NCBI RefSeq assembly: GCF_011386835.1
Contig: NC_088804.1
Location: 13,020,001 to 13,084,000, forward strand
DNA from: Chrysemys picta bellii
Lineage: Eukaryota
Direction: 5' to 3'
Length of the DNA: 64,000 nucleotides
Below the pieces are notes generated by a model. It was not told where the DNA came from, made no database searches, and worked only from the letters and a program-made list of their open reading frames with translations. Positions 4,207 to 64,000 of the stretch are shown one piece after another. The position numbers and the translations under genes are program-made. Position 1 is the first letter of the stretch; each line of letters opens with the position of its first letter.

Positions 4207-4217
4207 TGCTGAGTCAT
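4207..4217 (-). promoter_or_regulatory. Antioxidant response element (Nrf2/sMaf, AP-1 core) upstream of ferritin g1
   Basis: TGCTGAGTCAT, reverse ATGACTCAGCA, matches the RTGACnnnGC consensus; about 250 bp upstream of ATG 4465. Confidence 0.65.
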
Positions 4218-4290
4218 GCCCTCACCTGTGGATACTGTGTTAGGATCCAGCCCTCAAAGGTGACTGGTGCTGTAGGGAAGAAGGACATTT

Positions 4291-4350
4291 CTATTGGATG
4301 GCAGCAGCTGTCAATCACACCCACTCCCTGCTCTGGACAGCATTAATACC
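4291..4350 (+). promoter_or_regulatory. Conserved ferritin-array core promoter module (inverted CCAAT, CAGCTG, CACACCC, TATA-like)
   Basis: ATTGGATGGCAGCAGCTGTCAATCACACCC...CATTAATA; homologous modules precede g2, g3, g4, g5, g6, g7 and g9. Confidence 0.7.
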
Positions 4351-4464
4351 ATCTGTGAAGAAGAATGTTTCTGGTACTTTTCTGGGCTCTGTCTTGGTTA
4401 GAAGTGTTTGGTATCCCTAGAAATTTCTTGAGATCCTTTCTAGCTAAATCTTCCAGATAGACAA

Positions 4465-58627: not shown

Positions 58628-58760
58628 GTGAGTCAGCTACTCACCAGTGCAAATTCTGCAAACCTACAATGCGGATTGGTGTCTTGGGGAGGAAGGGAAC
58701 TTTCATTGGGCAGTAGTATCTGTAAAGCACAGTAAAGTTTCCTCTGAGCAGTATTTATAT
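58628..58760 (+). promoter_or_regulatory. g9 promoter: AP-1/ARE-like site, two inverted CCAAT boxes, TATA-like box
   Basis: GTGAGTCAGC 58628-58637, ATTGG at 58675 and 58705, TATTTATA at about 58752. Confidence 0.6.
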
Positions 58761-58883
58761 CAGCTTGTGCTAAGGGAAGAATTCTGTTTCTAGGCTGTGT
58801 GCTTGTGCCAGCAGCGTTTGAACACAGTGGGGTCTATTGATATTTGTTATTGTTAATTAAGGCTAGAGCTGATAGATTTAGAA

Positions 58884-61345
58884 ATGGAGTCCCAGGTGCG
58901 TCAGAACTTCCATGATGAGTGTGAGGCTGCTATTAATCACCTGACGAACCTGGAGCTGTATGCTAGCTATGTCTACCTGTCCATGGTAAATGTTTTTCTT
59001 CTTCTTTTTTTTTTTAAACACAAATTCTTGTCTCTTTATGTTCTAAGAGAGATGGGCTTCATTTTCTAAAAGGGTTGTGTGGGGTGTGGGGTTTTTTTTT
59101 TTAAGCTTGCTTTCTAAGTCCCTAATTTCTAATTAATTCCAGTTGAGGATAGCATATAGTTTGTGGGGCTACAGAAATCCATTTGTATAAATCTGAGTTG
59201 ACTATGGAAAGACTAATGTGTTGTCTGCAGAATGATGTCATTTAGAGAGTTTATTCTTACAGGATTGAATGCTGGGAACTTAATATAGCTATCTGAGGGA
59301 GACTTGGGAAGTCTGGCTTTGATTCCTAGCTCTAGCCCAAGCTCCCCTGTCATCTCTGGCCTGCCACCTCGTTTCACTCTGTTTCCATTCCCTGTTCACC
59401 AAAAGGGATGAATGCTCCTTGGCTGCACAGCCTGAAGCACAGGGAGTGTTTCTTGCCAAGTACAGAGTCTACCAACACAATAGGCTGAAAACCTAGGTTA
59501 AGGTCTCTAGGTTGCTATTCTAGTCCAGATAAAATGCCAGAATTTTCTATCTCTCTAGCCCAGGTCAGTAAACATTCATTTGCTATTCTTCAGTCCTACT
59601 ACTTTGACTGCGATGATGAAGCGCTGAGGCATATGGCTGAGTTCTTGAAAGAGCAGTCCCGTGAGAAGAGGGAGCATGCTGAGAAACTCCTGAAATATCA
59701 GAGCAAGCGAGGGGGGGGGGGCTCATTGTCCTGCAGGACATCAAGGTAAGCAACAAAGTAACACTGTCCCCTTAGGAGGGCTCTCACAAACTGGACTTCA
59801 GAGAATGGGGTTCGTAGCTGTGCTTGCGGTGTAGTTCTAATTCTCTTCTCTAGGAGTAAGTGATGGGCCTTGTTCAGGCATAGCACTTCTAAGAGTGATC
59901 TCTGTAGCAAATTAGGGAGAGCTGCATGGTTCAGGAGCATCTGACTTTGGCCATCTTATGGTAAAGGGTGAGTATGGACATGTGATGATACATGAGCCGG
60001 TGTTGGCTAAAAGCACAGAACAGGCTTGCTTACCTGTGACCTGACCATCTACTCCCTCACTTCACAAGCAACTACTTTGTTTTGTATTTATAGAATATGA
60101 AAATATAGGGATGCCCAGTGCTGTTAGTGGTGGGGTGGAAAGCTGCCTTGGTTGTGAAATTACACTCTACAGTGAGCATCCTGAGGTGTTTTATTCTCCA
60201 ACAGAAGCCAGAGTGGGATGAGTGGGGGAACAGCCTGGAGGTCCTGCAGTGTATCCTGCAGCTGGAGAAGACTATAAACCAGGTCCTCCTGGACCTGCAC
60301 AAGCTGGCTATGGAGAAGAATGACCCTCATGTGAGTATGGTAGTGGAGAGAGTGAAGGCAGTAACTACATGCATTGCTGCTTTGACAGTCTGGGGGGATT
60401 TACTTCTCCATCTGAAGCAGCCCTGAAACGGGGGATGTTTGTGGGCAGTAACAATGCATAGATCTAACATCAGACAGTCACAGTATGTTTAATTTCCTAC
60501 CCTGGGCACAAGGTAGCCAGGCTTTGAACCTATACAAGCTGCCCAGTGCAGAAATGACCCTCACCTGAGTATGGTCAGGAAAACCATGCACACATACCCT
60601 CTCCCCCCTCCGTGTTTAAGAAGTCTTCCCTTTATACACAGGACTAACAAGAACAAATCCCTTTTATGCTGCAATATTCAACATGCCACTCACTGTCTTT
60701 TACACATTGAGTGGTGAGGGCAGGAGCATATGTTGTATTCCAAGCCAGAGGGTAAGGTGCCTACCTGCCCTTTGTGTGTCTTGAAAACCACTCCTCAAAG
60801 GGCCTCTCTCTAGAGCTTCCAAAGCTCAGGGAAAAATGCCAGGTTGATGAGAAGCTGCGCTAGCTTCTGAATTTCTGCCACTACAGGGTTTTCATACCCT
60901 GGTCACTGGTGAATGTCCCCACTCTCAAGTGACATGAGCCATTTACTGCACATGAAATTTGAGATAATCTTAATCTCATTGCCAACAGCCCTGTTTCCTA
61001 GCTACTTCTATCTGTACAGTGGATTCCACACCATTTACAGTACTAGAGACTCTGAACTGTCCTGTAGTTCATTGTTTCAACACCATTTCTTGGCACAATG
61101 CCCAAAATGGGGGTTACTAAATGCCATACTACATACTAGAGAGCAAGAGTGAGTCCATAGACCTAACCATCCTCTGTCTCCTCTTACAGCTGTGTGACTT
61201 CCTGGAGTCTGACTACCTGGAGGAGCAGGTGAAAGCCATCAAGCAGCTGGGAGACCACCTCACCAACCTGAAGTGCCTGGGAGTGCCCCAGAGTGGCATG
61301 GGAGAGTACCTGTTTGACAAGCTCACCCTGGGGGAGAGCAGCTGA
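58884..61345 (+). pseudogene. Ferritin g9: complete four-exon gene with a single homopolymer frameshift (pseudogene or assembly error)
   Basis: Exons 58884-58985, 59594-59745, 60205-60330, 61190-61345; all splice sites GT-AG; 11-G run at 59711-59721 makes exon 2 152 nt instead of 147; E62K (SREKREH); AATAAA 61436-61441. Confidence 0.75.
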
Positions 61346-64000
61346 ATGGCACAGCAGAGACTCAGAATGCCTTATGCTTCCCTGGAACCTTGTATCCAGG
61401 GCAAAGAATAGTTTGACAAATCCTTAAATGCTGAGAATAAAGTTCTCTAATCCCCAGACCTGGACTTGTCTTTGAATAACATAAACCACTTTGTTTCTTA
61501 TGGGGGAAAAGCTCCCACTATATATGGTGGAGGATCTATTTAATGACTTGTGAAGTGTGATTATACCAAGGGAGTAATTAGGGCTTGATTACATCACCTA
61601 CTGGCAATCCTGAAACTCTCTGCAATAGAGAAATGGACCAACACAATCTGGCTGTACTACAGTGGTTTTAAAGAGGTGATAGACTTGGTAATGTTGCCAT
61701 GTGGTGAGAACTGAGCTGCCAGTACCTCCAGGTTGGTGCCAATAACCCAGCAGACCAATTCCATGTGTAGTGTAGGGATTTTTTTTTTCCCCTTTGGAAT
61801 TACTACCATTCCCCATTACTCTGAATGCTTCACTTAAAACCAGACTGAAGTCTTAAATTCTCTAAGTGGCTTGATTTACCCCATAACAGTGCACTTAAAT
61901 CTTAGTCTGAATGCTCCTGCATGTGATTACAGAATCAGAAAAGGAAGCTAGGGCTTAAAGGCAACAGAACCTTGACCTTGCACCTGTCTGCTTCCCTTGC
62001 TTGTTCTGATATTTCAGGAACTCGCTGCTGGCTCCCTGTCCTTATGAAGGAAACTGCTCCTTCAAGAACTGGGTCCTGTGCCATGTCATCACGATCAAAG
62101 TACTAGGACTCTGGGAAAGGACAGGAGATGTGTGAAAACAATGTTCGTTAGCTTGGGCTGCAGAGACAGATTCTTATGTATTAGTTAATTAAAAGAACAA
62201 GAGAGGCCTGAACTTAGGTTAGGAGCCCATTATCTTTGACCGTATTTAGCTGTTGCTAGATGATCTCATAATAAGATAAATGTAAGGGAGACGTATCTCT
62301 CTACCATCCAAAAATAAATCTTGCTTCTCAGATATGAAGTAGCTTCCATTGTTAACATAATGAGTCAGTCTAGCTTCAGCATGAGAAGGATGCAAGGGGG
62401 ACTTGTTGGGAATATATCGGAGTAATGCTGAGCACTGGAGACTAATAATGGTAGGGCCTGGCCTGGGGCAAGGCTTAAGTAAACATTGTGGGAAGCAGAG
62501 TGGCTGTAAGTATCCTGAACTTTCCAAACAGAGGATGGGGTAGACCTGACTACAGCTGAGACAATGGAATGACTGTTTAAACAATAGAGGCTTACCTAAT
62601 GATGCTTCAACCTCTTAGCTCATAATGAGCTATCAGCATTAGGTTGTGCCGCAGGCTAATACAGAGGGTGTAGTGGGTCATATCCCACTGTAACAGGAGA
62701 AGATTATTGGCTTGAACAGAATGTGTGACCTCAGAGTCGAATGACCAGTACCGCTTCTGGCTAGGCCCTTTGACCTTTTTAACAGATAATCAATATAAGC
62801 AGTTTCTCCCTATGCTGTAATCAGTGACCCTACTTAGCTCTTCAGGAATGAAACCAGAATGACTCAACTAATCTGCTCCTGTTCCACAACAAAAATTGGG
62901 CAGATGTGTGCTCTTTAAGCAGTTATGTCTGGAGTCTCAAAGCTGCAATGTGGCAGAGGGACTAACGCTGAAGGAAACATCCACAGGTATCTCATACTTT
63001 CGATTTGCACAAAGTGACACATCAGACAACCTGATCTAATACTTTCTTGTCCCTATCTTGACAACAAGGTTTACTTACCTGTATAAAGCTGAGATAAGGG
63101 TTAGCCCTGGAAATGTTTCATGGCATAATGAGTTTCAGAAGTAAGCCTGCTACCCAAACATCCTCTGGGCAGAGTGATAGAGGGGAGCTAAAAAAAGCTG
63201 CAAGAACAACTTTGGCTATCTGGTTCTGCCTGCTCAGGAGTGGGGTAATAAGGAAAATGTGTCCCAGCTCTGGCTGTTGTGGTTCTACTTAAATGAGCAT
63301 GAGAACTTGTGTAAAGTGCACAGCAGTGTGCAGGATGTGGTGTGTGAATTTCAGAACACTCCAACGTGTTGCGTGCTAACTGCCCTGTGTGGATGCTGCC
63401 AGTGTGACCTAAAAGGTACCTACCTGATGTGAATATAGTCCTGTTCGAAAGAGGATGGTTAATGTGAACTAAATACCTTTTATTCACTCCAGTACTGTCC
63501 ACGTGGGGGCAGTTAGCATGTAACAGTTGGGTGTGCTCTATAATTCACCTTACTCCCCCATAATATGCACTGCTGTGCACTTTAGACAGTGGCACATATT
63601 TTCCTTGCTTGTGAACAGACTGTCTGTTCCGACATTAAACCCTAGTGTGAGTGCTGCTGAGGGTAAGATGAAGACATGTCACAGTCTGCACATCTAAATA
63701 GTAGTATCCATCTAAACATCAAGAATTAGGAACAAGTCTTCTTGCTGACTGATGGGAGCTTGCTGTGTTAGTTGTGGTGCTTGGAGAGAATAGTGGATTT
63801 CAGCTACAGCTCTAGAGTGTAGTTGTTGCATAAGACACTTTGCAAACACAACAAAGGACATTCTCTTTGGCCTGACAAAGGAGTAACGTTGACCTTATAG
63901 AACATAGAATTACTCAATTTTTCCACAAATAGGCAGTGGCTACCTTCTCTCTCCTCCTTGTGATAAAGAAAGAAGGCAAGTGGCTTCAGTGGGAGAGCTA

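Follow-up and report, generated by a model that had tools for sequence, protein, structure and literature searches.

A tandem array of intron-containing, M-like ferritin genes in the painted turtle Chrysemys picta bellii

The stretch of DNA analysed here comprises 64,000 nucleotides of the painted turtle genome (Chrysemys picta bellii, assembly GCA_011386835.2, CM062331.1:13,020,001-13,084,000; hereafter the window) and carries a tandem array of ferritin genes. With exon peptides from the window itself as tblastn queries, 35 ferritin exon matches were obtained on the plus strand, with E-values between 1e-13 and 1e-31 per exon. Subsequent inspection of splice sites and open reading frames (ORFs) gave nine plus-strand ferritin loci between 4.2 and 61.4 kb (57 kb). 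Copies A, B, C, E and F are intact, D, G and I have become pseudogenes, and of H a fragment is left. Chance is excluded by the per-exon E-values, and the array is real. All five intact copies have coding exons of 102, 147, 126 and 153 nt, the four-exon structure of vertebrate ferritin genes, with an ORF of 176 amino acids (aa), GT/AG at all junctions and an AATAAA or ATTAAA polyadenylation signal 75-110 nt past the stop codon. These results agree with an earlier reading of the bare sequence (the original prediction), which had described nine co-oriented loci with conserved exon sizes, in states from intact to fragmentary and mostly equipped with their own polyadenylation signal and promoter module.

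Copy A (4208..6742) has its coding exons at 4465-4566, 4940-5086, 5544-5669 and 6476-6628, followed by TGA and a polyadenylation signal at 6737; its start codon lies at 13,024,465 of the chromosome, and a TATA-like box at about 4342 of the window. The deduced protein is 100% identical to the Chrysemys picta bellii protein XP_005289824.2, which bears the name "ferritin heavy chain A". Copy B (11466..14650; exons 11602-11703, 12464-12610, 13169-13294 and 14440-14592; polyadenylation signal 14645) is annotated in GCA_011386835.2 as a 176-aa gene, and its nearest proteins, from sea turtle, tortoise and Mauremys, are 94-95% identical. Copy C (21339..26494; exons 21571-21672, 23412-23558, 24227-24352 and 26253-26405; polyadenylation signal 26489) carries the substitutions E57K and E130K and corresponds to residues 6-181 of XP_005289827.4 from the same species. 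For copy E (35943..38997; exons 36047-36148, 37302-37448, 37961-38086 and 38763-38915; polyadenylation signal 38992), orthologues with 94-97% identity exist in Gopherus, Mauremys, Chelonoidis and Lepidochelys. Copy F (42811..45915; exons 42940-43041, 43710-43856, 44801-44926 and 45666-45818; polyadenylation signal 45910) is 98% identical to the ferritin portion of the Chrysemys Ensembl model P0178. The 123-residue N-terminal extension which that model gives to F is read from 40972-41350 and is probably spurious. This segment, about 1.6 kb 5' of F, is GC-rich with a 33-bp repeat and falls short of the CpG-island criteria; a 49-bp tandem repeat (42381-42527, 3 copies, 96% identity) lies about 280 bp 5' of the TATA-like box of F.

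The remaining loci show different kinds of decay. Copy D (30119..32684, coding 30245-32599) has a CT donor at exon 1, an exon 3 shortened by 30 nt, an in-frame TGA in exon 4 and the substitution E58K. Copy G (49397..52440, coding 49526-52360) is frameshifted in exons 1 and 2, and its exon 3 is eroded at the ends and interrupted by a 12-nt gap, next to an intact exon 4. Copy I (58629..61441, coding 58884-61342, polyadenylation signal 61436) also carries E58K and is complete save for a frameshift in exon 2 that stems from a poly-G run with 5 nt more than its counterpart in copy A. Of copy H (53734..54345) only part of exon 2, with E58Q, and exon 3 are left. Just past H, on the minus strand, lies a fragment of a long interspersed nuclear element (LINE) reverse transcriptase (55178..55645; Pfam RVT_1, E = 3.5e-15), which probably belongs to the insertion or deletion that truncated this copy. 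It is the only Pfam match among the long ORFs outside the ferritin exons, and no neighbour gene was found within the window. The two orphan exons of the original prediction were both recovered by tblastn on the plus strand, namely a decayed exon 4 at 8200..8313 (71% identical, with a 3-codon gap) and an exon 1 relic at 19020..19100. To these must be added a third, unlisted piece on the minus strand, an inverted exon-2-like fragment with a stop codon inside (61988..62102; weak, tblastn E = 0.001). In a 50-kb locus of the snapping turtle Chelydra serpentina, the stray exon 4 recurs at the equivalent place (13780-13860), and the place orthologous to the stray exon 1 holds a decayed copy with exons 1-4 present (25656-32611).

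The window represents the 5' two-thirds of the array, which runs on for about 30 kb downstream on a chromosome of 45 Mb. Past the 3' end of the window follow three more annotated 176-aa ferritin genes at a distance of 2.4-19.5 kb, J, K (XP_008165154.2) and L (XP_005290008.2), as well as two further decayed copies, one an exon 3-4 fragment and one about 27.6 kb beyond the window end. The array thus amounts to at least 14 loci over about 90 kb, at least 8 of them intact, and the "at least nine" of the original prediction holds as a lower bound. Upstream, the annotation of GCA_011386835.2 calls no gene within 10 kb of A. In an older assembly of Chelonia mydas (KB495293.1), where the flanking synteny could be followed, the upstream neighbour is SLC12A4, on the same strand and about 15 kb off. 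The gene model EMP41262.1 of that contig (10001-69824) even fuses SLC12A4 to the first ferritin copy; this fusion is an annotation error, yet it shows what the upstream neighbour of the array is.

Alignment of the upstream regions together with a motif scan revealed a shared promoter module, as had been predicted for most copies. Its parts are ATTGG and CACACCC boxes and, 104-136 nt before the ATG, a TATA-like ATTAATA. An element resembling a Maf recognition element (MARE) or AP-1 site is found about 232-255 nt before the ATG, in the forms TGCTGAGTCA at 4208 (A), TGAGTCAGC at 58629 (I) and TGAATCA in C, E and G. Each copy would thereby be transcribed as a separate unit, equipped with a MARE/AP-1-like site as candidate regulatory input, CCAAT, CACCC and TATA boxes, a short 5' untranslated region (5'UTR) and a polyadenylation signal of its own. 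The 5'UTR, from the TATA box to the ATG, is the least conserved stretch of the promoter alignment.

It is in this 5'UTR that the iron-responsive element (IRE), the target of iron regulatory proteins (IRP), would be expected. However, no match to the Rfam model IRE_I was found in the window, neither at the gathering score nor at E ≤ 10, and the same model found none in the scanned array loci of Chelydra, Natator and other Chrysemys loci, nor in two genes of the squamate Rhineura. Positive controls gave clear matches, with 48.8 bits in the FTL-position gene of Thamnophis (9793-9828 of that locus) and 54.5 bits in an M-like gene of a frog (9877-9912). The 5'UTRs of the window at 4340-4465, 11466-11602, 35943-36047 and 42811-42940 contain no positionally conserved C-N5-CAGUGN motif. 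A C-N5-CAGTG site at 35954 upstream of E was considered as an IRE and rejected: it abuts the TATA box, is unpaired and is not conserved in the other copies. If the IRE was lost in a single event, this loss predates the split of turtles and lepidosaurs. The output of the array would then probably be set by transcription, for example by an oxidant- or haem-responsive control of the Maf/NRF2/AP-1 type, and not by IRP-controlled translation.

The encoded proteins belong to the ferritin family (Pfam PF00210) with 134.7 bits for A, 127 bits for C and 124.7 bits for K. In the residue numbering of bullfrog M ferritin, A, B, E and F possess all di-iron ligands (E23, E58, H61, E103 and Q137) and Y30, plus the carboxylates of the three-fold channel. 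From established ferritin chemistry, these four would be catalytic subunits of the H/M type, able to assemble into 24-mers. Most subunits of the array would accordingly oxidise Fe2+ at the canonical di-iron centre; C, J and K are the expected exceptions, with altered or absent activity. Copy C keeps the six ligands; its E57K is present in 12 of the 12 orthologues of the C group that were checked, including Emydura, and its E130K, located in the three-fold channel, in 10 of the 12. J and K, both intact (2151-4855 and 4018-6800 in the coordinates of their own loci, about 2.4-13 kb past the window end), are changed at E58 itself. E58Q occurs in all 12 orthologues of the K group that were checked, and E58H together with Y30F in the J group of Chrysemys, Natator, Emydura and Pelusios. 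The changes of this bridging ligand are kept in sea turtle and emydid orthologues and, in the case of J, also in pleurodires. As E58 is the ligand that links both iron sites, J and K probably oxidise iron poorly or not at all, and they are probably non-catalytic "L-like" subunits. E58 is also lost in the dead copies, with lysine in D and I and glutamine in H, and E58K has arisen independently in some members of Rhineura, Elgaria and Sphenodon. The FTL-position genes of sauropsids, in comparison, retain the full H-type centre. The residue patterns fit a set of catalytic and non-catalytic subunits, and since the paralogues differ at catalytic residues in turtle-wide conserved ways, the cage-subunit repertoire suggested by the original prediction is in keeping with them; if the subunits co-assembled into 24-mers, the catalytic content of the cages would be tunable.

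How old the copies are can be estimated from their divergence. In a self-comparison of the window, similarity between copies is essentially restricted to exons and introns are unalignable. The coding sequences of the intact copies diverge by 8-15%, with pairwise synonymous divergence (dS) of 0.26-0.56 and ratios of nonsynonymous to synonymous divergence (dN/dS) of 0.12-0.20. The 50-kb locus of Chelydra is colinear with the window and 82-91% identical to it in introns and spacers, and Chrysemys-Chelydra orthologues have a dS of 0.19 and a dN/dS of 0.15. Even the youngest pair of Chrysemys paralogues, at a dS of 0.26, is more divergent than these orthologues, so that the painted-turtle copies include no young duplicate. 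In Chelydra, the B orthologue has an in-frame stop, and exons 1-3 of C are directly joined to the orthologue of exon 4 of E, with D and most of E gone (36782-40419 of the 50-kb locus), possibly through a deletion or an assembly collapse. Copy F has its promoter and first exon twice there, 2.8 kb apart (44892-47753). Because the losses in Chelydra differ from those in the window, gene death is ongoing and lineage-specific. Mean dS among the paralogues A, B, C, E and F differs between exons (0.70 for exon 2, 0.35 for exon 1, 0.26 for exon 4 and 0.20 for exon 3), for which gene conversion over short tracts or a constraint that acts on exons 3 and 4 are possible reasons.

Purifying selection has maintained the intact copies in turtles as distinct orthologue lines, and other copies decay. 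One could object that most of the "intact" copies are silent relics and that only one or two, such as A, are used: four of the nine loci of the window are already dead, and the promoter elements differ between copies. We regard this as unlikely. Silent relics would hardly show the low dN/dS found for all intact pairs and for the Chrysemys-Chelydra orthologues, nor would they have kept reading frames, splice sites and polyadenylation signals for roughly 100-200+ million years per paralogue line. Furthermore, in RNA-like sequencing runs the A and E regions are represented by 0.21-0.32 of their sampled words, approximately the mRNA or exon fraction, and different runs favour each of the two.

Among solved structures, bullfrog M ferritin is the closest to the array proteins (E = 2.5e-22 with exon 2 alone). 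Together with the H/M ferroxidase ligands of most intact copies, this corroborates the amphibian-M-like identity that had been proposed. A ferritin phylogeny, the check suggested with the original prediction, places the array in a clade of turtle and lepidosaur genes (support 100/98 in one tree and 81/98 in a tree with outgroups), apart both from FTH1 and mitochondrial ferritin (FTMT), which form a separate clade (100/95 in the tree with outgroups), and from the FTL clade. The further proposal that the array is "probably FTL-lineage" is not supported. If the array were the expanded sauropsid counterpart of mammalian FTL, the two should form one clade, and some findings are in favour of it: both the array and FTL fall in an M-like super-clade apart from FTH1/FTMT (81/78), forcing them together costs 15.1 log-likelihood (lnL) units and is not formally rejected by the approximately unbiased (AU) test (p = 0.10), and some array members have E58K, the same change as E62K of the mammalian L chain. 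However, mammalian FTL groups at 98/100 with Crocodylus genes and a second kind of squamate gene, all outside the array. One of these squamate genes, from Thamnophis ("ferritin, higher subunit-like"), lies about 9 kb from a gene for a 192-aa protein of the Bcl-2 family and has a canonical IRE. In human, the neighbour of FTL at 19q13.33 is BAX, which has 192 residues. The array adjoins SLC12A4 instead of BAX and is without an IRE, and the Bcl-2-adjacent ferritin of Thamnophis is a different gene. This comparison of FTL synteny covers the Thamnophis locus and the Chelonia array. That the array belongs to the FTL lineage is thus improbable, and we prefer to regard it as an M-type lineage of its own.

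The array is not peculiar to the painted turtle. Cluster look-ups found several such genes on one chromosome of about 44 Mb in every annotated turtle genome examined, with representatives of Chrysemys, Emys, Malaclemys, Trachemys, Terrapene, Mauremys, Gopherus, Chelonoidis, Chelonia, Caretta, Lepidochelys, Eretmochelys, Natator, Dermochelys, Macrochelys, Chelydra, Carettochelys, Emydura and Pelusios. Natator, for example, has four genes in 22 kb. All of these turtle genes bear the name "ferritin heavy chain A" or "A-like". Each copy of the window has separate best matches in other turtle families, and in the tree the J group (100/99) as well as the C group contain the pleurodires Pelusios and Emydura. 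Therefore, at least the J and C duplications predate the split of pleurodires and cryptodires. The array clade also holds three genes of the tuatara and squamate genes, with three on one contig each in Rhineura and in Elgaria. Co-oriented, intron-containing H/M-like genes are found within tens of kb in Rhineura (two) and in the frog Pyxicephalus (three), and frogs, sharks and teleosts likewise have multi-copy M-like ferritin genes. With regard to the birth-and-death expansion of the original prediction, gene death is evident from the pseudogenes and fragments of the window and from the other losses in Chelydra, whereas recent or turtle-specific growth is contradicted by paralogue groups that span cryptodires and pleurodires, by introns saturated between paralogues and by the minimum paralogue dS above the orthologue value.

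These distributions also bear on the idea that the array is a turtle-specific adaptive expansion for anoxia and reoxygenation or dormancy. Raised levels of ferritin H and L transcripts have been reported for the liver of anoxic turtles and for painted-turtle hatchlings that were frozen (PMC8067143), although the probes used cannot separate paralogues and the responses are not assignable to particular copies. A MARE-like or antioxidant response element (ARE)-like site in some of the promoters would suit a response to oxidative stress. On the other hand, the same paralogue groups occur in sea turtles, tortoises and pleurodires, none of which specializes in anoxia, sister multi-copy genes are present in tuatara and squamates, and Chrysemys has no young duplicates. 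An anoxia-adaptive origin of the array, for which the original prediction had seen a plausible case, is largely refuted and appears quite improbable to us, and the array shows no particular link to anoxia tolerance.

That the copies are an assembly artefact, with one or two genes falsely duplicated, is a worry of practically negligible weight: tandem arrays are error-prone in assembly, and the join of C and E in Chelydra may be such a collapse, but the copies differ by 8-15% in coding sequence with unalignable introns, their order is colinear in the independent assembly of another family, two Natator assemblies show dense arrays, and the region of copy E (36000-39200) is covered with 0.5-0.95 of its sampled words in DNA-like runs from several studies and under several organism labels.

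In summary, we consider it likely that the locus is a tandem array of cytosolic ferritin genes of the M type (H-like and ferroxidase-bearing), ancient and conserved, with no IRE in any of the array genes scanned, and separate from FTH1/FTMT as well as from the FTL-position gene. The array is pan-turtle, sister to lepidosaur arrays and publicly annotated, and hence less new than first supposed. It had been anticipated that a similar array might prove ancestral and already described. Ancient it is, and it has been annotated in RefSeq and Ensembl for Chrysemys and more than 15 other turtles; the literature searched, however, holds no paper on a turtle or reptile ferritin array or on ferritin-SLC12A4 synteny, and the IRE-less state and the ferroxidase variants have apparently not been described so far.

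Several points weigh against this interpretation. The deep nodes of a tree built on 176 residues are weak, and gene conversion may blur both dating and orthology. The adjacency of SLC12A4 was observed in one species only, Chelonia, and the downstream boundary of the array was not reached. In the motif scan of upstream regions, the MARE-like element is absent in B, D and F, and transcription starts were placed by the position of the TATA box only. The kind of the RNA-like runs is a guess, these runs are the sole hints of expression, and no transcript contig on record has the exact protein of copy A. Needless to say, heteropolymer assembly and the loss of activity in the variants are deduced from known ferritin chemistry.

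A more far-reaching reading includes the mammalian FTHL17 family. Eutherian FTHL17 is intronless and X-linked and is not known to carry an IRE. The search with exon 4 returned a marsupial protein among the relatives, which different sources name FTHL17 or "ferritin heavy chain A-like". Marsupial proteins named FTHL17 comprise 176 aa, are M-like and have E58K. Their genes span 10.7-13 kb in opossum and sugar glider and must have introns because of this length; they are loci of autosomal size. In the free tree, the amphibian genes, the FTL group, the array and the marsupial FTHL17 proteins emerge from one polytomy. A tree that constrains the marsupial sequences, which represent FTHL17 here, into the array clade is 1.4 lnL units better than the free tree (AU p = 0.56). 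Shared ancestry of the array and FTHL17 is possible on these sequence grounds. Tentatively, the array could represent an old SLC12A4-linked subfamily of amniotes, or at least of sauropsids. Control by IRP/IRE would have disappeared from it a single time, ahead of the separation of turtles and lepidosaurs; the subfamily would since have given rise repeatedly to members with a disabled ferroxidase site and would include the intron-bearing ancestor of mammalian FTHL17. Within this scenario, which we hold to be possible but doubtful as a whole, members with E58K, E58Q or E58H would supply the "L-like" cage subunits of reptiles, as the FTL-position gene is still fully H-like.

Apart from ferritin genes, the window contains repeats that are probably transposon relics. 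These are a palindromic element at 56864-57042, which resembles a miniature inverted-repeat transposable element (MITE) and was matched by a plant microRNA (miRNA) model on both strands below threshold, and a repeat pair at 20090-20333 and 32857-33117 (220-245 bp, 90-91% identity), alignable in both orientations. The miRNA-like Rfam matches at E ≤ 10 on palindromic repeats were discarded as sub-threshold and attributed to chance or to transposable elements.

The bare existence of the array is of limited weight, for many vertebrates other than mammals have M-type ferritin genes in tandem, and the present array already stands in RefSeq and Ensembl under uninformative names such as "heavy chain A-like". 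The parts worth pursuing are the IRE-less state and the conserved active-site variants. A long-conserved set of cytosolic ferritins seems to be free of the IRP/IRE switch, which is the textbook mode of ferritin control, and iron storage in reptiles may be regulated quite differently from that in mammals. The lines with a variant bridging ligand offer a natural series, roughly 200 million years old, in which the mixing of catalytic and non-catalytic subunits in one cage could be studied. In addition, the results clarify the nomenclature with respect to the sauropsid positional counterpart of FTL and provide a testable origin for the mammalian FTHL17 family.

Among the closest known ferritins are those of amphibians. 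Bullfrog M (PDB 1MFR) and the Xenopus "ferritin heavy chain A/B" share with the turtle proteins the length of 176 residues without insertions or deletions, 70-80% identity and the ferroxidase ligands E23, Y30, E58, H61, E103 and Q137, and the frog genes, too, are multi-copy on one contig. Unlike the turtle genes, the tested frog gene keeps its 5'UTR IRE, and D140 of frog M is replaced by A or T in the turtle copies. The canonical 5'UTR IRE that characterizes the IRP/IRE-regulated ferritins (FTH1, FTL and frog H, M and L) was not found in the array genes scanned. With FTL and its positional counterpart in Thamnophis, the array has in common the four-exon ferritin fold family and the M-like super-clade; it differs from them by its neighbour SLC12A4 in place of a BAX-like gene, by the missing IRE and by its position outside their well-supported clade. 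FTHL17 resembles the array as a ferritin paralogue outside the FTH1/FTL pair, and the marsupial proteins share E58K with some array members. Mammalian FTHL17 is X-linked, multi-copy in mouse and expressed in germline and cancer. Eutherian FTHL17 is devoid of ferroxidase activity (PMC5312872). The genes of the window do not conform to this intronless, X-linked and ferroxidase-dead type: they have three introns, most keep the ferroxidase ligands and the intact copies retain E58. With nine co-oriented loci in 57 kb, the window finds its place among the tandem M-ferritin arrays of non-mammalian vertebrates. In snailfishes, M-ferritin genes of the fthl27-31 type form tandem arrays of 3 copies in Tanaka's snailfish and 14 in the hadal snailfish, and this expansion was proposed to buffer oxidative stress (PMC10746142). 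Both systems consist of tandem, intron-containing, H/M-like vertebrate ferritin genes; the snailfish arrays are recent and lineage-specific, whereas the turtle array is ancient and has been kept copy by copy.

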